From assembly GCA_009103225.1 (NCBI GenBank), contig RHPI01002533.1:938682-1002681 (forward strand): a stretch of 64,000 bases of DNA. The letters run 5' to 3'. Source of the DNA: Chlorokybus atmophyticus (Eukaryota; Plantae; Mesostigma and Chlorokybus algae). Positions 7,298-44,100 of the stretch are shown piece after piece (position 1 is the stretch's first letter; each line of letters opens with the position of its first letter). The notes below the pieces were generated by a model. That model saw nothing but the letters and a program-made list of their open reading frames with translations. It was not told the DNA's origin and did not search any database. The position numbers were made by a program, and so were the translations under genes.

Positions 7298-7834
7298 TGT
7301 AACGATTGGGGCCCGACCACTAGGCTATGGTAGTAAAGACACTACCATGAGTGAGGTCTGTCACAATTCATCCCAATTTGTGACATTCCTCTCCAATTTA
7401 ACCCATGAGTTTCTCATAATCCAATGAGGCACTAGCCCATGTTGCCGTGTTCGCAACCGTACCACGATCGGTCTGCCCGCGGCCTGTTGGATCCGGCCCA
7501 CGAACGGTCCTGACCGACCGAACGGCCATCCTCACCGCGCGACCTGCCATCGCAGCGCGACCGCTCACGTGGCCTTAGGTTGAACTGGCTCAGCGCGCAG
7601 GTCGTAATTACGCGCCCAGTCTAGGGCAAGCCGCCCCAAATGTTGTGTTTTTGCCTTGGATCTGCCTCAGTCCCCTACGGAAATTGAACCTGAGACGTCA
7701 AGCTTCATTACCATTGTAACAATTGGGGCCCGACCACTAGGCTATGGTAGTAAAGACACTACCATGAGTGAGATCTGTCACAATTTATCCCAATTGGTGA
7801 CATTCAATGTCACGAATTGGGATAAATTGTGACA
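7298..7834 (-). mobile_element. TRIM-like miniature LTR element (TRIM-A)
   Basis: 88 bp direct repeats TGTAAC…GTGACA at 7298-7385 and 7715-7802. On the minus strand a PPT (GGAGAGGAA, 7386-7394) precedes one LTR, and a PBS-like TGGTAATGAAGC starts 1 nt after the other. GCGCC flanks the element at 7293-7297 and 7835-7839 if the extra module 7808-7834 is included. The 329 bp interior is non-coding. Confidence 0.85.
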
Positions 7835-10269: not shown

Positions 10270-10384
10270 GGAACCCAATGTCACGTGCAGCATCGGAATG
10301 AACTCACAAGTGTCATAGGCTTTGTCAAACCCTGCGCATAGAAATAACATATGCATCTATGCAAATTTCACAAGGCGCAAAATG

Positions 10385-10572
10385 TATATATATACATATA
10401 TATATTCATATATGTATACATATATGTATATATACATATATATATGTGCATACATATATGTATACATATACACATATATATATGTTTATATATATGTATA
10501 CATATATGTATACATATACACAAATATGTATACATATATGTATATATATACATATATCAATATATTATATTT
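10385..10572. repeat. Degenerate (TA)/(TATACA) microsatellite
   Basis: Alternating purine-pyrimidine, AT-rich simple repeat. The Y/I/M/H-rich ORFs here are artefacts. Confidence 0.95.
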
Positions 10573-12349
10573 GTATTAATAGTGTAAATAAACCAATAAT
10601 AATAACAATAACTTCGCCATAATGTATTCGTCGCTGCTGGAACGGCACAAAATGATTGGGGCCTTTTACCTTGTATTGTTTGATTATGTCACTTGCTAAT
10701 AATATACACCGAAATAGCTACTGCATTAAGTTAAACAAAAGTACTGCTTATTACTTATACAAAAACATCAGTTTGATAGTGGGACATGTTGACCACCCGT
10801 TTGCACTATGTGTATTGTTTTTCCATACTCGTGCCATATGACTAAAAGTAGAATTAAAAGGCCTGTACTATCAACACTATGTTGACATTTCTTGATTTAT
10901 ATGTACGGTAGTTGCAATGAAGCACCTCCACAACTCCAACGTCATAATAAGCAACATTTGAACATGTTTTAATGAGTGATTACCAAATAACACATGCTAT
11001 TAAGCAGATCAGCAATATCAATGTTTGCAATAGCATCAATTGTTATGATTATTTCCAATAAACACACGCGATGTTCAATTGCAATTGCGCATACATCACA
11101 AACTTTAAAATGTTATTTAAGTGACAAAAGTGTAGCATTGTGCATCCGCAGGCATAATTATGAACACGCCTCGCTCGTCAACTGATTGGCTCTAGAGTAT
11201 TGTTTTTATATGCACACGGTATGAGAAATGCTCTTTGTTGAAACGTGTTGTTTCAAGAGGCCTACTTTAGTTGTAGCATATTAAGTTGCAAAAAAACAGT
11301 ATTTATTAAATTGTAATTATCGTTGGACGTTTATAACACAAGTTTATACGTCGCACTTTTGCTTTGAATCAAAAAAATCAGCATTATCGGTCGTATTAAC
11401 TTCAAGAGGCTGCTCAATAAGATATGACAGAAAACGTTGTGTATAACAACACTTTATTTACTTGATATTCAGAAACAACACTTTTATAGGAACCTTAAAG
11501 TCGTCCGACTTTGAGGCTGTGCTCAGAAACATGGTGTTCAATGGATTAATGCATCTTGTTTGGGCATCAGCTTTTACAATAGCAGTAATTGTGAATTATA
11601 GCAAGGATATGACCTCTATTATACTTGTCAGCTGCTTTATGGCTCGGTCTTGGGTTGTTGGTACAAGAGTGTATTGTTATTTGCTCCTAAGTGTGAATAG
11701 ACATGATGGGATTCTCATTGGCACGTTGAATTAAGGCTTAGGTTAAGTTTGGTCTAAGCGGCATTGGTAACTTTTAAGTTACTGTGGCCGTGTAACGGTC
11801 CCGCCTGTCTGCTCCTGCGCGCGCCACGTCTTCACAGGCACTGTGGTCCGGCGCCGTCGGATGGAAGATCTCGGCAACCGAGCACTATCCAACGGCACCC
11901 GCTCGCGCACATTGCCGACCTCAAAGCAAACGTTTGTCGCTAGCGTGCTTCCGCCTCTAGCTGGCACCAGCTGCGTCCACGTCGCGGTGGCCTGCTTCAT
12001 GACGGCTCGAACAAGGCAAAAATCAAGCTCGCGTTGCGGGCCTGATTTAGCAGTGGTGCACCCCATGTAACACAGGACAGCACGCAACATGACGTGACGC
12101 AGGATAAGCATAAGTATGCCAGCGTGTAACGCCGTCCTTAGGGCAAGTCTGTGTGTACAGAGCTGCACCAGCGACAAGGCGTATCAGCAGCGGCGGGGTT
12201 TGTCGACGAGGTTGCTGGAGTGAGCGCCGCCTGGGTTGTTAGTCGGTTGGGAGCGTGTGAGCGAGATTGTCTGGACAAATCTTGATTGCAAGCAAGAGGG
12301 CTGCACAGGGTGGTGCTGGCCGTCTGAGGTCATCTGCAAACCGGTGGTC

Positions 12350-29134: not shown

Positions 29135-30394
<1,260 letters not shown>

Positions 30395-30490
30395 TTTAAG
30401 CCTAACATCAAATATCAATGTGTAATGAGGCAAAAGTTTGTGACAAAGGGGGTTCTGATCACTGAACTAACATGACTTTGTGTATATATG

Positions 30491-30525
<35 letters not shown>

Positions 30526-32103
30526 TGTATTTGACCACAGTCACGGTAGCGTCTTTTGCTACCACAACCTAATGGTCGCAACTTGCTTTGCTATCAAGGT
30601 ATTTTATGATAACGTAGTAATTGCATCGGGTTGTCTTCAACGATACCCATATCAATTTGTATTACGTGCATACCTTACGTGCACATAATATGAAATTCTT
30701 ATGCGAGCCTTCCCATTTTTTTGGTCAACAACCTGCAACGTGGAGCTAGCGCTGCAGACCATTCCCGCGATGGGATTGAAGGTCTGGAGGATAGGTGCGA
30801 TCCTACCACTTCTGCAGCTGATAGCTTTGTCTAGGAGGCCTGCCAGCCGGGCAAGATCTTGGCAACCCAAGCGACACGCGAAGTTTATACATAAAATCTC
30901 AAGTCTATACACGTACTGTGGTGACATTATAACATTTCAAACTGTTTAACTGGTAATGCTTGTTTTTAATAATTCGCATATTGGCATGCATTACATGCAT
31001 ACCTTACGTGCATATGTTATAAAACTCGTATAAAGTTAAGGTTATGCATGTACTCTGGTACCATCTTATCTTGGAGTGTTGAAGTGGTACTACAAATCAT
31101 GTATGTAAACGTAAGTATCCGGTATGTTCCCTCGCTCAGCATAAGAGGGTGGTACATGACAGTTGCTCAGGTACATTATGCAGGTGCAGCCCTTGTAGTG
31201 CTTACAAAGGGTAGCATTTATGGTCACTGCAAGCGCCAATCCCAGAAATTAAACGGCTTCTTTGCGAGCCGCGCCGTCCACATTGCGAGGTGACGGGTGA
31301 CGCTTCTCGCGAGCGTTGTGACGCGATTCGTTGTCACTTTTTACGCGTGTGACTTTTTATTCTCGGTTGCCCTTTTGGCGGCCATGTTAACGCGCCTAAC
31401 AGAAACCTCAGACGATTGTCCCAAACTTCGGACACTTTCCACTAGTTAGGGCGCCGCTCACTGGTTATAGCGTTGTCTTTGGAGCTTGATGGTTCTATGG
31501 AAACCTCAGCTGATAAGCTACCAGTTGAGCTTGACAGAGCCAATCAACTGCGTGCACATCACGCCGTCTAAGACCGGCTGCTTGTGCAGGCGGTCCAAAG
31601 CAGTCCGTGCTCAACTTCGGACGGTTGAGAACATCCTTGTAAGGGGAAGGTACATTATAATTACCACAAATCGACCACAAAAGCACCAAGTCTTTTGTGG
31701 TCGAGTGGGCTATGCAGCCGGATCGCCCGAGGGGCTTTTGCCTGCTAGCCATTAAGCAAGTCCCGACCCCCTCACGTCGGGTGCGACCCGCGTGGAGTCG
31801 CGCGGATTGGTGTTGAAAGTGATGGATTTTGGCATTGCAATGTCCGGTGTTTTCGCCGCGTGTCGGGTCGATTGTGCGTGCCTGGGGGCGTGGGTTTGCA
31901 AGGGTCGAGGATGGTCCGCCGTGATTTGTCCGGACCCAAATCCTAGTTGAGTGGTGTAGTGTCGTGGAATGTCGGTGTGGTCTGTCGGAAGTCCACGCGA
32001 GTGGCGGCGGAAGCTGTTGGCGTAAGTCCCCGCGAGTTGAGCGCGAAGCAAATGGTCATTGTGTGCAAGTCCGCAAGGATGCATGCTATACGCTGGAGAC
32101 GAT

Positions 32104-32135
<32 letters not shown>

Positions 32136-32961
32136 GGTGGCGGCGGTGCCGGCGGGAGGGTTAGGCCTTATGTGCATGTGGAGTTTTCTGGAGCGCTCAT
32201 AGATCCGCTGAAGCAGTAGGGTGTCCCGGCGTATTGCCTAGGTGGTGCCATGTGCTGCTTGCAGGCCTGCAGATGCAAGTGAGCCAGGCTTACGTAGACT
32301 TGAGCTGATAGTAGTGACTCCCTTTTGCTTAATAAAGGCTGTGATTGTGGCGTTAATGTGCGTGTCTCATGGTTGGTGTGGGCTGCAGCTTGTTAGCTGG
32401 TGCTTCGCCGTTTTGGCATGTGCATGTGTGTGAGTCTGACGGCAGGTTTGCTAAGGTTCTGTACTGTCTCATGTGCATGTCATGCAAAATGTTGCAGTGT
32501 TGGTTGTGCCCTTGCACAGTCAACTGCTGTATGAATGATCACATAGAACACAATGGTGAGGTTGTTGCTGACTCGTTGTTTTTTACTGTTGATGATGTTA
32601 CTACAGTCTCAAGTGTGATGAGTATGCAATGGTGCTGTGAACATGTTGTGTAAACGAGTGTGGACATTGTCAATGAATGCATGTCAGACGCCTGCTGTGT
32701 TCATAGCTGCGTTCAACTGTAGGATGTCTACATACTCGTACTCATCTTGTGCTTGTGCTTGTGCTTCAGATGCAGTGCTGAGGTTGATTGTGAATGCTGA
32801 CTGTGCACTGCTGGTGTCTTATATGGATGCATCAAGTTATGTGTGCCGTTTGTTGAGCAGCAGGGTGTTTCAAGGGGTGGGCTCTGTTACCAATTGATGC
32901 ACGCCCATATTGACATGCACGTGGTCTCACAGAGTATGCTGTGAGTGCAAGGGCAATGATT

Positions 32962-34156
32962 TCATGTCCATGACAGCGGTGAGCTGCTGACAGTATATCC
33001 TAAAGCACGCAACATGAGTCGGCCTACATACTCAGAGTAGGCCGGAGGTATGCACTCAACTAGTGTTGACTCGGCTCTGATCCACTCAATGCCGTGCGCT
33101 GTCTTCCAGCCCTCTGTTGTCCCACGTGCGCCTGCTTGCCCGTAAATGGGGTACATATGTGTAGTGCCTATGTAATCTGCTTGGCTGGTGGTGTGTGTAC
33201 AGTGTCCTGACAGTGCACCCAAGCTTTTGCCTACGTGATCGCAGACCATATCCACCGCCACAATGGGGTGGGTCTCAAACACACGATGTCTGAAAGTCGA
33301 GACGCCGAACATGGTGCCGCACAGCGTCATGTTCGGCTTCATGTGCCGTGCAGCATCCGGTATCTCTCCAAACAGTAAGGTTTGCCGGATTGATGTAAGC
33401 GAAGGCGCAACGTGTGCAGTAAAGTGCTGTGGTTCCAATTGGAGGAATGTGCTATACGTTGGAACTCAGGTATGCAGCGCGCATAGGCTTGACATGGTGG
33501 GCTCGCCCAAACCACGTCATATGGTGTTAGGTCAATAGTCATTGCATCTCCAAGGATGAAGGGAAACGGGTACTCTGGCTGCTCGAGGCAGTCGACTCCC
33601 GTCACATCGAAGCCTGCGCGATGAAGGCCCATACTAGCGCCACCGCCACCGCAGCACAAGTCCAGTAACTTGGGACGATGGGGGGCTCCGTCGGGGCTTT
33701 GTGCGGTGTGGGACAACAGGAGGGGCGAGGATGAACTCCACAAGGGAAGACAAGGCAAAGGTGGATCTGCCTTTTGGTTGGTAGGTACTCTACCCCCACC
33801 GATCTTGATGCATGACATGAGGCCATTGACTTGAAGGCACACCACTATGTTGTGCTTTTCAATCTTCATGTGTTGCACATCTCCATCACCAAAACGCACG
33901 CTGTGGCGCACTGGCAAAGCAACGTCGTTAACATATGTCATGAGCGTACATGGTGGGCAGCATTAACGACTGCGTGTGATATGATGCATAGCTTGCACTA
34001 GCACTTACAATTGCAGTCGTTGTAGCTGTAGCTGCAACCCTCATACCAGTCACGGTCCGCTGGCCAGTATACCCTCACCGTACAGCCGACCAAGGCAGCA
34101 CCTCCGTCTGCGCAGCGCTTGCGATATGCGGCGGCGTCATCATCGTGTGCATTTCG
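32962..34156 (-). pseudogene. Tudor domain-C5 cytosine DNA methyltransferase fusion (one frameshift at motif VI); likely has more exons up to about 34960
   Basis: Exon 34156-34009 spliced (GT-AG intron 34008-33911) to 33910 gives [51 protein letters not shown] (Tudor). It continues into [15 protein letters not shown]…GVD…GDA…VVWASPPCQ…PYCLE, then a frameshift at about 33364, then IPDA…LCGTMFG…RHRVFE…GIEW…ECIPPAYSEYVG. Confidence 0.88.
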
Positions 34157-35166
34157 CTGCAATTAGCGCATGGAATGTCACGTACGAACGGTACGTGCAC
34201 TGAACGTGGCGTCAACTATGGCAGCATTGCATGCACTCACCAACGGCGAGAGTGGGATGCATGGCAGCTCGTGTGTGCCCCGCGCCTGTGCGCGTGCGAT
34301 GCCTCTCCCGCAACGCGCGTGTTGGGACTGCGTTGCCAAGTCATGTATGTTACAGCTCGTGGCTGACATCAGGATTGGAGTTGTGAACAACACACGTGCA
34401 GCTCACACAATCGACAGGCAATGTGCATTACGTCGTACCGCAAGCATACGAGGAAAGCGGCATGCGTGGTTGCGCGCCTACACACACAATGCACCCGTGA
34501 CTGCAGGTGACTTAGCTGTGAACTATGAGGTGAGCTGATATTACGAAGATTACATACCTTGTGCAAACTGTATGACGCGTCGGTGGGGTGGCTGCCCCGG
34601 GACACATACGGCATGTTGCGCATGGGTTGTCCATTCCATTCGAACAGCGATTCTGCGCATTGATGACAGGTGCACTGTGTGTGGAAGAACTCAGGGTGTG
34701 TGCATTTCATCTCCTCTGCACTCGATGACATGAAGACCAGCTGCTTGATGATGCCAGCAACAGGCGGTGAATCCGAACAACTGCTTGTACTGCCCGCATT
34801 GGGCTTGATGTCTGTTGAGCCTCGCACGTTGGCCGTTCAAGACTGCATATGCTTGGCACACTGAGCAGATCAGTGCAGGCCTCGATCCGCCGGCGGCGTG
34901 CATGATGGCTGCCGGATGCCACGCATGCATTTGACAGCGCAACTGATGCGCTGCCAGTCATGAGCCTCCTGCGATCATGTTCAACCCTAATAATACGCTC
35001 TCAAACTCTAAAATAGCGATCACAGTGTGTATGTTGACAGTGATCAACCGGCGGTGTGGACCTGAGCGTTGGCAGGGTCGGCGGCCTCCTACCAAACAGG
35101 TACATAGATGTGGGCAAATTGCATGCATGCATCCTGTGGAGTAGGGATGTCACAAGAGTTCACCTG

Positions 35167-38100
35167 TTACTCAATAGGCACTGTCAAGTCTTCTATGATG
35201 TCCAACCACTCGGCTACTGTGTGTTCTTGTGCATCCAATTCTTGTATGTCCTCCAGGTCGGAGAGAACAGTACAGTCATCCTCCGACTGCAGGCTGCTGC
35301 ACTCTTCATCTCCAGTGTCATCATCCTCTGAGCTGCTGGACATCTCCAGCTCCTCTTGCATGTGTGTTTGAGTCTGTGTTGGTAACTCCGGCTGCTGTGT
35401 TTGCTGTGTGTTGAGTTGTGTCGGCTGAGCTGTCTCCGAGTTGTTGCAGCCAATGCATGAGCAACTGTCAGAACAATGCGCGCCTTGCTTGCGGCATTTG
35501 CAGGCCTTGGTCTTGCATTGATTCTTCTTGCAGCTGCACCTGTTCAACACGCGGTCAGCCCTGCTCTTGGCAGCTGCCATGTTGGCTGGAGTGTCCATGA
35601 TGGCACATGCAATGTTGTCGATGACCTCAAACCCATGTTGGTCCAATGCTGGCAGGTGCAGCACGGGCTTCCAAGACTGAAGCCACATCTCAACCACCCA
35701 TATGGACCGGAGGCAGTGATAATGCAATGCTGGAGTTGTGGCCATATCTTCGTGACTGTCACTGGTATGGGGCCATGTGGTCTTGCGGATTGCAGTCAAC
35801 CACTTCTCAATGCAGTCAGAATTGTCTTTGCTGGAGCGCGTGCTATTCACGTCGTAGAATAGCGCTGCTGGTGATGATGTCGGTTGAAAGGCTGTCTTGT
35901 GCTTGTAGAAATAAGCACAGCCGATCAAGCGTAGCATCATTGCAATCGCATTGTCTCTGTTGAGCTGACCAACCGGAGCAATGAACTCTGCCTCTCTGCC
36001 CATTGCGTGCTGCCAGTAGTACAGCTTAGAGATACCAGCAGTGTAACTGGTGTAATCGCAGCCAGTAACTGCGAAAAACAGCAAGATCTGGAGTGACAGC
36101 TGGTTGGGTTGTGTGTGTCTCAACTGTGGCAGATGCTTAAGGTTTTGGTACACAAGGTTAAGGTTGACAAAGGGCGCCCTTGTTGAGGCACTCCCATTGG
36201 TACTGATCTGCACGTGGACTTGCTTGACTGCATCACCCCACATCTCCAGCGCTGCAAGCCCAATAATGGACACATCAGTGTCCGGTGAGTAGATGAGGAT
36301 GGTCTTTTGCGTGCACTGCTTTGCACGATACCATACGCGTGAGTCCGCCTCCGCGTGGTTGCAGCTGTAAGTGTCCACAGTGTCGTAGATTGCTACTCCA
36401 TCCTCTATGCGTACTCTGCGTGCGCATCCAGACCACTCATCCAAGTCAGAGCCGCCTGCCACAATCAGCTCCTGTTCTGGACGCAGGTGTGGTGCCGCCA
36501 TCTCGGGGATGGTCGCAGTAAACAGATGACAGAGCTGGCGTTTGAGGGTGCGATCCGACAATAAAGACCTCCAATTCCTTAGAACCTCGGAGTTGAGTTG
36601 CAAACTAATGCTGCTGCGCTGTGTAGTCCCAACCTTGCTTGCTTGCAGATTCGCCTTGACACCTGTCGCATGCTTAGGGTCGTCAAACACGACATGTAAA
36701 GCTTGCAGTGTCGGGTTGTGCAGTCGAGGGATAATGCAAGTCTTCAGCAGCTGGTCCAGGTAGTCCGCGATGGTGGTGACGTGAGGTAGCGGACTCTTGT
36801 TGATGAGAAACATACCCTCCTGGATGAGACACTCAACGCCAGGGGGAAAGCTGCGGCGCTCAGAGTTCTCAGCGCTGCCCACGAGTGCGGCAAGGAATGA
36901 GGCCTTGTTGCCCTTGCGCATCTGGCCCTCTTCGTTAAACAACGCCGCCGGGATGTCGACATATTGCTGTGTGCATGACTCTTCACCGGCGCCCTGCTTG
37001 GCCAGCCTCTTGAGAATCAAAGTCTGCACGACAACAACCAAGTAAAAAAACATGAACTGCGTTGGTGCCGACATTGCAGCTCAATGGCACAGCAGCATTA
37101 GCAGTGTCAGTGCATGTATCAACCACTGTGCATTCACCTTTTCCCGCCTGCACCTGTTCAGTGCGGTGTTGCCCTTCTTTGCCTTGTTGACCACGGCCAT
37201 GGCCTTCAAGCCGAACCGTTTGGTGACCTTCTGCAGTGGCACTTCACGGCTGTGGGTTGCTTGAACAAACAACTTGAATTGGTCTTGTCCTAGCTGATAA
37301 TGGCGCTGTAGGTCCAATGTGGTAGATGGCGCTGCTGGCCGGGCAGTAGATATGTGTTGCAGGGTGTGCAAGTTGGGCTCTTCAAAGACCAATGCAGCAT
37401 CTAGTGCCCGACACATCCGCTGTACATTGAATATGGTGCGGTAGCTGTCATGTGAACTTGCAGCGCCGCGCACGCCAGGTCCACGCAGCATGCAGCCTCC
37501 GTGCATTATGGTCCTGACCTTCTTCAGCATTATAGCTCGGTACGTAAAATGACCACATTTGGTACGCATGCTTTCTGGTGTAGGCCGCCCTATGCAGTGC
37601 TTTAAGTCCTTGTTAATGAGGCATTCATGCGCTTCATCCGATGCCACTGCATGCCCAGGACTGCCTGTGATAGATACAGCGAAAGCACCCGCCTTCAGAT
37701 GCGATAACACATCATGAGGCATGTCTTGGAGGTCACGCAGATGCAGGCTAATCAAGCGCTGGTACCAAGGGCGATCCCATGCAAAGGCAAGCGGTGCCAG
37801 TTCCTTGTAAGCACCCACTCTAAGGTGCCAATTGCGAGATCTGATTGCACAAAACAACTGCACATAGGCAGCTGCATCTCGCTGCGTAAAATTCCACCAT
37901 AGTGCAAAGGTGCAGTCCACTTTGCTGCGCTCCTCGCCCCACTTGGTGAACTTCTCAGACCACTGTGGGTCTGCCATATCCGCCATGTTCCAGTCCTGCT
38001 CCGTCAACCATGTCGTGCCATCGGGTGAGCTAGTACTCCACACCTTGATTTGGTGTCGGTATATGGCCTCCCATACTTGCAACAAGAAAACATGCACGCG

Positions 38101-41100
38101 CTTCAACTGACTTGCGTCCAGCAACAGATTGCGAGCAGTGCTCCTCGGGAAGCCACACTTGACTGCCAATTCTTCAAGGCCGGCATGATAGTATATTTCC
38201 ATGATGACAGGCAGCAAGTTGTAGAGGGCGTGCCAGTCCCCTGGCAGAGGTACCAGCCATTCCCAATATCCAGGCTCATTCAATTTTAGCTGTTGCATGA
38301 GAGTGTACGTCTTTTGATCTCCAGTAATGGCTACATAATGCCTGGTGGGGTCCAACTTCAACCGTTGTTTGACTTCAGCCAATGCCAGGCGCAGATTGTC
38401 GCTGCTGTCGGGGTTGTAAGGAAGCAGCGGTAAGTACAGGACCTTGCTTGGAATGGTGTCCTCAACTGGCTGTGTTTGTAGCCATGCCTCCTTTACACAG
38501 CCCTCTATCTCTGACTTGTCTTGGTTGAACATCCGGTGCATCAGCGTGTTGTGCATACTGATCTGAAACTTTTGCACAGCACCCTTCTCATCCCAAGACA
38601 TATTCACTATGCTGTGCGACGCAGGATGCGTGGTTTGCTCCGTTCGTTGTTCAGCGCCCCGAACATATGTGGTGGGCAATGGCGCTGGTAGGTCAGCTTC
38701 CAAGAGTGTACGGTGTCGCGTCCGCTGCAACGCACGCCACAACATGTCAACATGACTTGCATGCCACCATTTCATGCAACACATACAAAACCATGCTGGC
38801 AGCTAGAATGCACATATTCTAAGCAGATGTCATACCGGCACATCCTCCTGCACAGGGGCAGTTGTGGAGTCGTTGGGAATCGGTATAGTTGCCATGGTTG
38901 TGGTGCAATGCAGATCGGTGGGCACCTTGCCGTCATAGCGCCCCATGAAGGAACTCTTCATGTCCCAGTTGTCAACTGATAAAAGCACGAACTCCCCTTC
39001 GTCTAGTTCTATAGGCGCTGGATTATCCATTGTGGCCTCATTCCTGGCTGTAATGTGCCTGTCCAAAGTGCTACGACTCACACTGATGCCCATTCTGTTA
39101 AACATCTGTATCAGGACGTCACTACTGGAGTACATATCCAGTGTCTCAGCGAGAGCCACATGCATCTTGGAGTAAGCCTTAGGATTCCTTGCATACACCG
39201 TTGATGACAAGAGGAAACCCGCTCGCAGCACCTTCTGCGATATGTGTTGCGGAGCGTCGTCCATGTGTATTAATTGCAGACCACCATCCTTACTGCAAGT
39301 GAGCGCCTCGAACAGTGCCACGAGGTCAGAGTCAGCCTCACGCAGAGTTTCTTGTGCATCAATAAAGCGCAAGTCTGGGCATGTCACTGAATTGATTACC
39401 ACGCGCCTTCTTACTTCACTCTCCACCAGTTGTCTGATGTAGCGCAGTGTGTCTGAGGTCAAGAGCGATGTTTGATTCTTGTGCGCCACCTGCGACGCCT
39501 TCAAGAGATGCTGCGCAGGGTCTACCCACGCTGGCATAACGATGGACCCATCCACACGGTTCCGTGCCACAGTAAACTTGACTGCTGTCTTGAAACACTT
39601 GACCGCAGCATTGAACAGCTGCCTAGAATCCCTCACGCCATATTGTTTACTCACAGCGTTTAGGTTGACAACACACTCTGATGACAACAGCTGTTGCGCT
39701 ATAGCCACCAGCGCTTTGTGCACGGCCCCAACTCCCCTGCTGGTAAGCACTGACTTGATGTGCACCTCGTGTTGCTTGCGCTGTGTTTGTGCCTCCTCCG
39801 CCCCAGTCGTGCGCTCGGATGTTGTCTGTGCACTTGCTGACTGCTTTTGCAGAAGCTCTGTCCGTTTGCACTAATTGCAACTCCTGTTCAGCACAACGCT
39901 CTTCCAGTGGTGTGAAAGCTAGTTGCAGATGTGTGCACTCCGCTTCCCAGTCCTGAAGCTCCCTGGCCTGCTGCTCCACCTTCATCTCCAGGTCCATATG
40001 TTTGCTTTGCAGCTCTGTATGGGACTGCTCCTCCGCCTCCAGCATTCCTCTGACCACAGAGATCTCGTACGCATGCATGCTGGCATCCTCTACAAGCTTG
40101 TTGTTGTGACTGTGCAGCCTCCTTGCGCGCTCCTTCATTGCGGTGAGTTCTTCAGCCCTGGTCCTTGAGTCGCCTTCCACCGCACGTGTGTGCGCTTGCA
40201 GATCAGACATTGCCTCCTCCTTCTCTTTCAACACCGTTTGCATGTTGGTGTTGAGCATGTGTTGGGCCTGCAATTGTCTGGTCACAGTCTCTAAATGTGC
40301 AACCAACGCACGCTGTGCTGCGTCAAGCCGCTGCGCATTCTCCACTACCACGGCTGTTTGCTGACAACGTTCCTGCAGCCCGTCCTGCGCCTGTTGTGCT
40401 CCCTCCTGACTGCGGCGCAATGCGTCATCAAGCTCTGCCACACGCAGCTTCAAGTGTCGCTCAGCCTCTACCGCCCTATCGCGCTCCTCATCACGCACCG
40501 CCAGTGCCTCCTCCACATCTCCAAGCCTGTCGCCAGATATGCCCAGCAGCCCCTCCGCTTCAGCAACTCGCAGTCGCAGTTGACGCGCGCCCTCTTCGAC
40601 CTCTGTGCACTTGGCCACTCTCTTGGCCAACTCATGTGCGGCTGCTCGAGCTCGGTCATTACTGCTGCGTATTTCCTTCTCCGCTTTTGACACTCGCACA
40701 CGCAGTTGACGTGCAACTTCTTCTACTTCACCCCAATCCTTGTCTCGCTGTGCCAACCCTTTTTCAGCTGCCCGCGCTCGGTCGTCACTGATGCGTACCT
40801 CCTCCTCAATCGCAGCCACCTGCGCCTGGTAAGCAATCCCGTCACGTCTGCGCCACTGCACTACAATTGTCGCTGCTAACAGCTGCGCTGATGATGACCG
40901 CGCCTGTGCTTGCAGTGGTCCTTCTGCACGCCTAGCCTCTGCCAAGGACTCCTTCATCGTCGCCAGCTCGGTTTGCAAAGCCTGCGCGTGCTCCTCCACA
41001 CCACGGATGCAAGCCTGTAGCTTTGCCCGCTCCTCCCCCCAAACACGAGCCCTCTCCCTCTGCTCCTCCTCTGCCGCTGTACGCATCTGCTGCCTCTGTC

Positions 41101-41170
41101 TGTCAAGAGTCTCCTCTACCATGCATAGTTCCACCTGCAGCTGACGATTCAAATCCAGCTGCGACTGCAA
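35167..41170 (-). CDS. Academ transposase: coiled coil, DDE core, XPG/FEN-like nuclease, Cys8 (CXC) finger; spliced, with an apparent frame break at about 39870
   Basis: DDE core: VDNWD (about 38970), GDQKT (about 38315), GDWH (about 38235), DEAHE (about 37630). XPG-like: EGMF, VVFDD, NHAEADSRV, SPDTDV, TGCDYTS. Finger: CSCKKNQCKTKACKCRKQGAHCSDSCSCIGC. Phase-0 GT-AG introns at about 38833-38728 and 37138-37026 join the ORFs. Possible 5' exons extend to about 42850. Confidence 0.85.
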
Positions 41171-44100
41171 TTTATTTTACATCTGCAGCAGACGTAGCTG
41201 ACATCAGGCATCAGCCCCCCCCCTCCGAGTTGTTGCNATGGCTGCAAATGATGCCGTTTGGCAATGGAGCTTCCCGTGTTGGTTGCATATTCCAATGCCT
41301 CGATCACACTATTGAATTTGAAGTATTGTTCGTCTCCGTAGGAAAAGCAAATCATTGTGTGCTTTATCTCTGGCACTGGCGTGCAGGCTGAGCTTGTCGC
41401 TATATCTGTGTAAAAAGCCTGCACGCAGAAGGCAAAAGCGTGTATCAGTTGCACTGACAGAAACAAGCAGTTGCCTGTGATGGAACGGCTTGCTTGCGAC
41501 TGAAGAGAAGGAACAGCTCTCTCTCGCACACACACACGCACACACACGCACACACCCCCACACACACACATGTACACTGTGATGGCAATGCTCTACACTG
41601 CAATTAACCATGTACAACATACAATCGCGCAGCCAGCACATTCATAGACACTGCATGCACAGTGACTAGCAGCACAACCTACCTGATCACTCTCTTGTCT
41701 GCAAGTTGCACCACACGTCCTACGTCCTACTGCATGCCCTACAAACAGCAAAGTAGCACAAGCAATTAGATTTCCACCATCTTCATTATGTATCAGAGTG
41801 TTGCAAGGTGCATAGCAGTACACTTATCAAGCAGCTCCTACATACTCACAATACTACGCTATGCTCCAAAGTTTAGCGACGCACCCCCAACAGAGGCACT
41901 CGGATATGTCTTCCTTGTGGTCCCCATCGTACCGGCGGGAGTCCTCATATCGGACTGTGACAACTCCACATTGCCAGGGCGCGGGCGTGGTTGCAGTCCT
42001 ACATTTGACGTCCTCCTGGCCCGTAGCATGTTGCCATCGGCATCAACATAACACATATTCTCCGCATCCCAGACAGGGGGTCTAGGCGGCGGCTGCTGGA
42101 CACGGACGCACGGCGCATCAGATGACTCAAAATTTCGTACATGGCATGTATGTGCACACGCAGCAGAGATGCACTCATATGCAAGAACAACAATGCAGCA
42201 CACGTACAATCTGACACACCTGTGACGGCCTCGCTGCAGGCAGAGCACAATGTGAATCTTGACTGGCGTAGAGTGGCAGCACCGGCGGAGGGGTAAACAT
42301 GACGGCTGCCGGCGTCACATCCACTTTTGCTGGATGCATTGCCTGCCCCGACAAGCACATGAGCATACAGCAGCATAGTAAGCATGAATGACCTGTCAGA
42401 CTTGACTATCGTTCAACACAAGTTGCACATTCACAGTCTGATACAATCAACTCACCGGCAGCAGCCGCAAGCCATCAGGGGCCACCTCCCAACACCTGCC
42501 GCTAGTCAGGGCTAGTGTGTACACCCTTGCCGCACCCAGCTGGCTCTCAATCTTGAGGTCTCTGCGCAGAATCTTCACCTGCTCTGTTTGCAGTGTACGT
42601 GCATTTTGTGCCGACGTCTTGTTCACCTTAGCCCTCTTTACGACATTGACCGCCTTGCGTTTGGACGATGCTGGCTTTTCTTTTTCAGGAGGCGAGGTAT
42701 GCTCTTGCTCCTGCCCCTCGCTATCACCCAGCTCATCACCCCCCACCATGCCCTCCTCCTCCTCGTTATGTTGTGTGCCACCCGGAGAAAGACAACCAAC
42801 CCCAAGATTGCCTTCAAGGCGATTTGAGAACACACTCGGCGTCGTAGACATTGCTATCGCCATTCGCAACACCGCCGCCGCCACCACTACAACGACGACG
42901 ACAACAACAACAACAACAACCCCGCAGCTCTGCTCCACAGCGGCAAACACAGTTTCAAACAATTTAAAACACGCGTTCCAGCCAACGGTCCCCGAGGACC
43001 CAAACCGACTCATCTAACCACACGGAATGTACTGTCCACGAGCATGTTCCCGACCAACGCCGACAATTGCAATTTTGCCATGCTTCGGTCCAGGCCGGTC
43101 CGCGCAGGGATGCCATGACCGATCAGGACTTGCGCTGCCTTGGGCAAGTTGTATCCAACCGGACAAAACCAGACCCAAGGTCCCACGCACCGGCACATCC
43201 CAATAGACACGAAATGATAATTCCACTCGAGTCCGAGGGGCACCACAGGGACCCACGCCTGTCCGACACTTTCGACATGGACCGTTTCGCTTGATGGAAC
43301 CCCCTCGGGCGATCCGACTGTATGACATTAATCATCGGAGCTTGAGACCCTGGTTCGATTCCTGCCTCGCACACGAATTCCGCGGTCGTTGTTTCTCGAT
43401 CCAATAAAATCGTAAATGGTCACTTCATAAGTGCCATCATCGATGGGTCGCGAATTGCCTTATGGCAGTCGCGTCAGACTGACCAGTTCAGTCGGCGCGG
43501 CAGGATGCGACTTGCCTATCGCGGCGACGCAACCTGTGGGGCCGGCAGCGGTGCGCTATGCGCGCGTTGACCGGTATGGGCCTAAAATTGGCCGGTCCTT
43601 GGGTGGTGGGGCCGGTGACCGACCCTAAATCAGACCCTTGGGAAGATTCCCCAGCTGATGAGCGCCAGCTGCCGAGGACGTCAGCGTTCTTAAGTTAAGG
43701 GGGGGAATGTAACGGGAAGGTACATCAAATTACCACAAATCGACCATAAAAGCACCAAGTCTTTTGTGGTCGAGTGGGCTGTGACAAGCCTGCTAAATAT
43801 AAGACATGTGGATGTTGTGGCGGCGCAATGCCGGCCAACCTGCGCGAGGTTGTTGCTGCTGGGGTTAGGCATGGTTGGTGAGTGGATGGTGCTGTGGCGG
43901 CGCTACTTACTGCGGCAGCAGCGGCAGCTTGAGACTTGAGCATGCGTGGGTAAGTATCACACTTACACGGTGTTGCATGCAGTGGTGTGTGTGGCGCTCT
44001 AAACTTGTGATGATGTGCATGTGCATGTAGCATGAACAGCAAGTGTGGGCAGTGTGTTACAGTTCTTGTGTATGTGGCGCTCTCAACATGTGATGGGTGC

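Follow-up and report, generated by a model that had tools for sequence, protein, structure and literature searches.

Transposons generally count among the targets of DNA methylation, and the locus described here raises the question of whether one of them may also carry an enzyme that writes this mark. The locus lies in a 64,000-nucleotide stretch of Chlorokybus atmophyticus contig RHPI01002533.1 (the 64-kb window, to whose numbering all the positions below refer), where an element of 11,606 bp, bounded by terminal inverted repeats (TIRs) and a target-site duplication (TSD), spans positions 31715-43320. A preliminary description of this DNA had proposed an Academ DNA transposon with its own C5 cytosine methyltransferase. 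Based on our analysis, the segment is likely one copy of a cut-and-paste transposon with the gene pattern of AcademX elements, carrying a passenger gene that fuses a Tudor domain to a short C5 methyltransferase.

The two TIR arms, CAGCCGGATCGCCCGAGGGG at the left end (31715-31734, plus strand) and CAGTCGGATCGCCCGAGGGG at the right end (43301-43320, minus strand), are identical at 19 of 20 positions and at 21 of 23 when extended. When up to three mismatches were allowed, the 20-mer CAGYCGGATCGCCCGAGGGG matched the window twice, in both cases at the TIR ends, and it had no match in 100 dinucleotide-preserving shuffles of the window. The flanks of the element provide a further comparison. A repeat of 74-81 bp, which contains the internal hairpin ACCACAAAAGCACCAAGTCTTTTGTGGT, is present at 31638-31714 and at 43708-43786 in copies that are 95-96% identical. 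The filled site reads GGGC-TATG-element-TATG-ACA, whereas the repeat copy at 43708-43786 reads GGGC-TGTG-ACA; excising the element together with one TATG therefore leaves the left flank collinear with the second repeat copy. This copy is a modest paralogous empty site, the evidence being modest because only 3 bp of the repeat extend past the TSD. The unique TIR pair, its absence from the shuffled sequences and the empty site bear out the 19/20 TIRs and the TATG duplication originally described.

The element sits 3 bp from the end of one copy of the flanking repeat, which may be a preferred target. Regarding a tRNA or short interspersed element (SINE) origin of this flank, ARAGORN was negative on the window and on the reconstructed empty site. 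A B-box-like sequence, GGTTCGATTCC, is located directly to the right of the element at 43357-43367, where the ARAGORN tRNA search was also negative.

The Tudor-methyltransferase cassette (32962-34162) lies within the TIRs and the TSD, on the same strand as the transposase and downstream of it, as had been stated in the preliminary description. Around these coordinates, we found no TIRs or TSD belonging to the methyltransferase itself, and no inverted or direct repeats of at least 20 nt flanked the cassette except for matches of a GGC microsatellite. The strand and the G+C content of the cassette are the same as those of the rest of the element.

All the long open reading frames (ORFs) of the element are on the minus strand. 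They represent more than the two genes initially reported, since a coiled-coil ORF (39647-41170) and the Tudor exon pair are present as well. The N-terminal transposase ORF, the transposase core ORF and the nuclease-like ORF that follows share one frame and are split by stop codons only; with two postulated in-frame introns of canonical form, the transposase frame would be readable throughout. Homologues of the transposase core (P0121-P0128), with 29-38% identity, are uncharacterised proteins from Mytilus and from metagenomes. The VDNxD, GDxKTY and DEAHE blocks are conserved across the relatives (alignments A1 and A2), with SVDNID in the Ptychodera protein P0278 at the position where the element has VDNWD; VDNWD, GDQKTY and DEAHE contain candidate DDE residues.

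In the nuclease-like ORF, the blocks HVVFDDPK, NHAEADSRVW, IYSPDTDV and TGCDYTSY, typical of FEN/XPG 5' nucleases, can be recognised, and they are kept in the Ptychodera and Mytilus relatives (alignment A1); AGGSD is a further FEN/XPG-like motif of this ORF. The putative XPG-like identity of this ORF is based on these motifs only; a weak lead to Pox_G5 was also obtained for the region (atlas score of 0.82). A single protein of Mytilus, P0124, extends over the transposase ORF as well as the nuclease ORF, and the transposase-nuclease pairing is therefore conserved. The CXC finger of the same ORF, CSCKKNQCKTKACKCRKQGAHCSDSCSCIGC, matched the TCR/CXC family PF03638 at 6.6e-5, its 23.6 bits lying marginally above the cut-off of 23.5. 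Just upstream of the coiled-coil ORF, the assembly contains a single N at 41237.

Considering these genes together with the ends of the element, an assignment to Academ, and within it to AcademX, is plausible. The AcademX traits present are the 4-bp TSD, the TIRs and the Cys-rich finger, and the ORF that follows the transposase may be the expected XPG-type nuclease; we read the CXC domain as the published Cys8 finger. AcademX elements have been reported to generate TSDs of 3-4 bp and AcademH elements TSDs of 9-10 bp (PMC10045372), so that a 4-bp TSD fits AcademX and not AcademH. AcademX elements, as they are summarised in PMC10045372 from Kojima (2020), have the same TSD and TIRs, a DDE transposase, a FEN/XPG-like region and a Cys-rich finger. 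Bivalves, in which Academ elements are abundant (PMC10294476), supply the best named homologues of the transposase. The element differs from the Academ elements of bivalves in its length, as its 11.6 kb is approximately twice their reported mean, and neither the coiled-coil ORF nor the Tudor-methyltransferase gene was found for Academ in the literature searched.

The methyltransferase is encoded by two overlapping minus-strand ORFs (33339-33941 and 32962-33438). Along them, the motifs follow in the order I, IV (SPPCQ), the YCLE of VI, LCGTMFG, RHRVFE (VIII) and ECIPPAY (X). None of the motifs I, IV, VIII and X is damaged, and in the alignment they fall in the same columns as in relatives with an unbroken frame, in agreement with the motif list of the preliminary description, in which motif VI was already given as frameshifted. 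The Glu codon of this motif (33368-33366) is followed by two stray bases (33365-33364) in place of the Asn codon of the ENV sequence, which has thus lost one base, and the frame continues from Ile (33363-33361). A piece of a contig of sequencing run X1 spans the frameshift site (33243-33374) with 0 differences, which shows that the frameshift is genuine in at least one expressed copy. It follows from the broken motif VI that the methyltransferase of this copy is dead, and the earlier idea that the element could use it to mark itself or its insertion sites is impossible for the copy studied here.

Upstream of the methyltransferase domain, and in frame with it, the gene encodes a putative Tudor module. 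Its two halves fit the pattern VGxxVxVYWPxDxxWYxG...HxVxFxDGD, which is that of plant Tudor domains; Pfam gave no match for either half alone. The halves are separated by a 98-nt intron. A 900-nt X1 contig with 99-100% identity to the element lacks positions 33911-34008, and removal of this intron brings both Tudor halves into the frame of the methyltransferase ORF; the X1 contig is also continuous over 33470-33910. The X1 contigs and the X3 contigs cited below come from two studies of one organism, and the RNA nature of the runs is the tool's guess. The methyltransferase domain itself is one uninterrupted exon. Thus, the gene is indeed spliced, as the term 'intronized' had implied, but the intron is located in the fused Tudor domain and not in the methyltransferase domain, to which the term had been applied.

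The X1 and X3 contigs also define spliced RNA from the plus strand, with the joints 32278>32933, 33045>33243, 33374>33470, 35096>35254, 35361>35656, 35763>36132 and 36283>36486, all of which are antisense to every ORF of the element. The reading of these joints as sense introns was rejected: on the minus strand their ends are CT..AC, and canonical ends are obtained on the plus strand only. The joined forms leave the minus-strand frame open, an unexplained outcome whose probability by chance was roughly estimated to be well under 1 in 100. One X1 contig carries the minus-strand intron together with plus-strand joints, probably because sense and antisense RNAs were assembled into it without regard to strand. 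Both strands of the element thus seem to be transcribed. Separately, an X2 contig, which has another organism label and is probably DNA, matches the element up to 34780 and continues with unrelated sequence, a break that points to a variant copy or a breakpoint at 34780.

With regard to its family, the N-terminal half of the methyltransferase matched phrog_363, annotated as 'DNA methyltransferase', at 2e-19, and 1528 homologues were found at E<=0.001. The best of them are proteins of approximately 215 amino acids with 55-60% identity, named DNA cytosine methyltransferase by their sources; Streptomyces, Mycobacterium and Paenibacillus phage enzymes have 42-45% identity to the same half. The ORF that holds the N-terminal half reached 0.031 with PF00145, below the cut-off of this family. 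Some relatives match PF00145 at 4e-15 to 5e-7, Pfam scans of four others (P0129, P0130, P0146 and P0175) gave no PF00145 match, and NCBIfam returned no methyltransferase family for either half of the protein. A search with the C-terminal half against 1.84 billion representatives gave 783 matches, the best being P0129, P0130 and P0025, with P0146 and P0175 lower down. P0001, which groups with these five proteins, was the top match of the N-terminal-half search. Overall, the best matches are bacterial, phage and virus-like-contig enzymes of approximately 215 amino acids and 44-60% identity, and not DNMT1/MET1, CMT, DNMT3/DRM or DNMT2.

The nearest relatives have an MBD-like insert at the position of the target-recognition domain (TRD), between motif VIII and the C-terminal block; the MBD family PF01429 was found in P0001, P0130, P0146 and P0175, with values down to 1.2e-8. 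Approximately 60-130 residues of this insert are missing from the methyltransferase of the element, which has the C-terminal tail LGYxVxYxP in common with the insert-bearing relatives. In a maximum-likelihood tree of 68 proteins, a set without any eukaryotic DNMT reference, the element copy forms a seven-member clade with P0001, P0025, P0129, P0130, P0146 and P0175 (SH-aLRT of 97), which joins a second insert-bearing clade (SH-aLRT of 95). A constrained tree in which the six MBD-bearing proteins group together without the element copy was not rejected (p-AU of 0.87), and the element copy may therefore be sister to the six rather than nested among them. A secondary loss of the MBD in the element copy is accordingly not shown.

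The genomic settings of these relatives point to viruses. P0133, a member of the second clade, is encoded on a 245-kb metagenome contig (L008:1-16012) between an intein-bearing Rpb1 gene and the gene of a 1173-amino-acid family-B DNA polymerase, and this contig is a giant virus. P0025 lies on a 29-kb contig (L001) with topoisomerase II, the ribonucleotide reductase small subunit, an aquaporin and many ORFans; P0129 (on L003) is preceded by a Cys-repeat ORF and a T4 RNA ligase/PNKP gene; and P0001 is downstream of a 2OG-Fe(II) oxygenase gene at a spacing of 65 bp. The nearest kin of the methyltransferase are thus on giant-virus-like contigs. The earlier placement of the enzyme in the phage/prophage class, as opposed to plant MET1/CMT/DRM, holds for the short phage/bacterial class as a whole, as indicated by phrog_363 and the homologues; the tree and the contigs place its nearest kin with giant-virus-like sequences instead. 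A scan of IMG/VR with P0130 yielded only the phage contig L012, with a short methyltransferase.

The virus-like loci L001-L005 and L011, which encode P0001, P0025, P0129, P0130, P0146 and P0175, contain short C5 methyltransferases with the MBD insert. An MBD inserted in place of the TRD could make a self-contained maintenance-type enzyme, and no report of an MBD inside a viral methyltransferase was found in the literature examined. At L003:46-1785 and L003:3694-4919, there are a 579-amino-acid ORF with about a dozen Cys-rich repeats and P0129 itself, split by a frameshift. The Cys-rich repeat ORF is presumably EsV-1-7-like.

The coordinates of the element, its genes and its transcripts are collected in Table 1.

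Table 1. Features of the element at 31715-43320 and of its target site, in window positions.
Feature	Position	Strand	Basis or remark
Left TSD, TATG	31711-31714		Identical to 43321-43324
Left TIR, CAGCCGGATCGCCCGAGGGGCTT	31715-31737	+	Inverted-repeat pair with the right arm
Antisense spliced RNA(s)	32184-36654	+	X1 and X3 contigs, seven GT..AG joints
C5 methyltransferase, C-terminal half and stop codon, without MBD/TRD insert	32962-33363	-	C-terminal homologue search
Frameshift, two stray bases at the Asn codon of motif VI (ENV)	33364-33365	-	Alignment with relatives
C5 methyltransferase, N-terminal half, motif I to the Glu of motif VI	33366-33689	-	phrog_363, 2e-19
Tudor-like domain, second half, and linker, in frame with the methyltransferase	33690-33910	-	X1 contig
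98-nt intron, GTAAGT..GCCAG	33911-34008	-	Joint 33910>34009 in X1 contig
Tudor-like domain, first half, LVGCTVRVYWPADRDWYEGCSYSYNDCN	34009-34162	-	RNA-supported splice, plant Tudor pattern
635-amino-acid FEN/XPG-like ORF with CXC/Cys-rich finger	35167-37074	-	Motifs; TCR PF03638, 6.6e-5
Candidate 114-nt in-frame intron, AAG/GTGAAT..CGTGCAG, removing the transposase/nuclease stop	37024-37137	-	Predicted from sequence
Transposase core ORF with GDQKTY, PGDWH and DEAHE	37081-38784	-	DUF6589 PF20231, 6.9e-9
Candidate 111-nt in-frame intron, GTATGA..TTGCAG, removing two stops	38725-38835	-	Predicted from sequence
Transposase N-terminal ORF with VDNWD (candidate first catalytic Asp)	38830-39765	-	Same frame as the two ORFs downstream
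507-amino-acid coiled-coil ORF	39647-41170	-	Other frame, overlaps the start of the transposase ORF; Pfam negative
Basic ORF of 188 amino acids and low complexity close to the right end, possible 5' exon	42447-43013	-	ORF list
Right TIR	43298-43320	-	Inverted-repeat pair with the left arm
Right TSD, TATG	43321-43324		Identical to 31711-31714

Elsewhere in the window, AT-rich (TATATG/TACA)n arrays with long imperfect palindromes occur at 10358-10620 and 29180-30400, where the G+C content falls to 32%. Additionally, two 91-nt direct repeats at 7298-7388 and 7715-7805 are 96% identical and lie 417 bp apart.

Several known systems resemble parts of this element. Retrotransposons that encode DNMTs have been described as SymbioLINE-Dnmt and SymbioDIRS-Dnmt3 of Symbiodinium and as Dnmt3-bearing elements of Klebsormidium (de Mendoza et al. 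2018, PMC5890265). These likewise have their own C5 methyltransferase, either within their coding region or carried as cargo, but their enzymes are largely of the eukaryotic Dnmt3 type, whereas here a DNA transposon with TIRs and a TSD carries an enzyme of the short phage/bacterial class, with giant-virus-like kin, fused to a Tudor domain. According to the account in PMC5890265, Bao and Jurka (2013) reported DNMT-encoding DNA transposons in marine viruses. Among DNA transposons, TET/JBP genes are found on elements of 11 fungal lineages, with transfer from lineage to lineage (Kojima 2025, PMC12730594), and TET genes of Chlamydomonas are found on a cut-and-paste element and on Helitrons, a group within which a TET of a giant virus also falls (bioRxiv 10.64898/2026.10.09.758095). 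The likeness consists of a DNA-modification cargo on cut-and-paste elements that moves among lineages and giant viruses of algae; the TET/JBP enzymes modify or remove 5-methylcytosine (5mC), while the enzyme of the element would write it, the opposite action.

The short phage C5 methyltransferases of phrog_363, such as gp8 of Streptomyces phage Muntaha and gp50 of Paenibacillus phage Bob, have the same motif order and size as the enzyme of the element, also without a large TRD, and are 42-45% identical to it over the N-terminal half. They are stand-alone proteins of approximately 205-235 amino acids, in contrast to the gene of the element with its Tudor domain, linker and spliceosomal intron, and the C-terminal LGYTVxxxPL tail is common only to the element and the virus-like MBD clade. 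Eukaryotic genomes are known to contain virus-derived 'orphan' DNMTs (PMC12344493; Sarre et al. 2024, PMC11244446). These are likewise C5 methyltransferases of a non-eukaryotic type with giant-virus relatives; they lie in endogenous viral regions or stand alone, whereas the gene reported here is inside a bounded DNA transposon. In the literature library searched, which is incomplete, we found no paper that links Academ elements with a DNMT and none on a eukaryotic cut-and-paste element of a cellular genome with a Tudor-fused C5 methyltransferase.

Several observations weigh against a transposon with a functional Tudor-methyltransferase cargo. The interpretation is based on one copy: tblastn found no second copy or fragment elsewhere in the window, the exact ORFs of the element are absent from a collection of 15 billion proteins, and a transposase scan of metagenome contigs gave no further copy. 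In the nuclease ORF, no XPG domain was detected by Pfam, by phmmer against the Protein Data Bank (PDB) or by a PDB profile search with alignment A1, and the AlphaFold model of this protein is poor (pLDDT of 53), with weak Xrn1 rows in Foldseek/VIA-align (Z of 4.5-4.9). The identity of the putative Tudor domain rests on the plant Tudor sequence pattern and on the in-frame, RNA-supported splice, and the abundant spliced RNA across the methyltransferase is antisense. The methyltransferase of this copy is frameshifted in motif VI, is devoid of the MBD/TRD insert of its nearest relatives, and has an end branch of 0.91, the longest of its clade (0.27-0.59 for the others); the long branch and the frameshift give it the look expected of a decaying passenger. 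These last three features are those that would be left if a giant-virus or host fragment had been captured once by a sublineage, performed no service, decayed neutrally and were absent from most copies. DNA transposons do pick up host fragments, and a frameshift is also present in the contig-borne gene of the closest relative, P0129. Nonetheless, a eukaryotic intron is spliced in frame, the gene is transcribed and all the other methyltransferase motifs are intact, and we regard such a chance capture as unlikely.

That the cassette landed inside the element copy as a separate mobile unit or as a viral fragment is quite improbable: it has no TIRs, direct repeats or TSD around it, and its strand and G+C content are equal to those of the rest of the element. 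Even less probable is that the boundaries are wrong, i.e., that the TIR pair arose by chance or belongs to a larger composite, and that a transposase neighbours a resident methyltransferase gene of the host or of an endogenous virus. The 74-81-bp direct repeat does bracket a slightly larger segment, 31638-43786. Against this, the 20-mer occurs at the two ends only and not in the shuffles, the TSD is perfect, and excision with one TATG restores the collinearity with the second repeat copy. We therefore retain the interpretation of a single AcademX-like transposon copy with a Tudor-methyltransferase passenger gene as the likely one.

If intact copies exist, their Tudor domain would tether the enzyme to chromatin with a particular methyl-lysine mark, and the tethered enzyme, if catalytically active, would write 5mC on the chromatin so marked. 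In this way, the element or its surroundings would determine how they are themselves methylated. The data show directly the ends of the element, its gene order, the motifs, the clade, the spliced Tudor intron and transcription, and we infer from them the catalytic activity, what the Tudor domain binds, a possible advantage for the element and which way the exchange with viruses went. A broader and more tentative proposal, which we consider rather doubtful, is that active cut-and-paste transposons of this green alga spread a Tudor domain together with a virus-type C5 writer, as a cassette traded between transposon lineages and giant viruses, and that intact copies methylate DNA at Tudor-read chromatin, thus shaping the host methylome or shielding the element.

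The known exceptions to the role of transposons as methylation targets are retrotransposons carrying DNMTs and DNA transposons carrying TET erasers, and a DNA transposon with a 5mC writer and a reader of histone marks would add the missing combination. One enzyme family would link phages, giant viruses and transposons. The survey of orphan DNMTs was based on PF00145 at E<1e-4 (PMC12344493); given the weak match to this profile, profile-based DNMT surveys may therefore have missed the methyltransferase family described here. Should the broader proposal be true, the cassette would, as a writer, be the counterpart of the TET genes carried by fungal and Chlamydomonas transposons, and, if intact copies are active, part of the methylome of the alga could be written by transposons.

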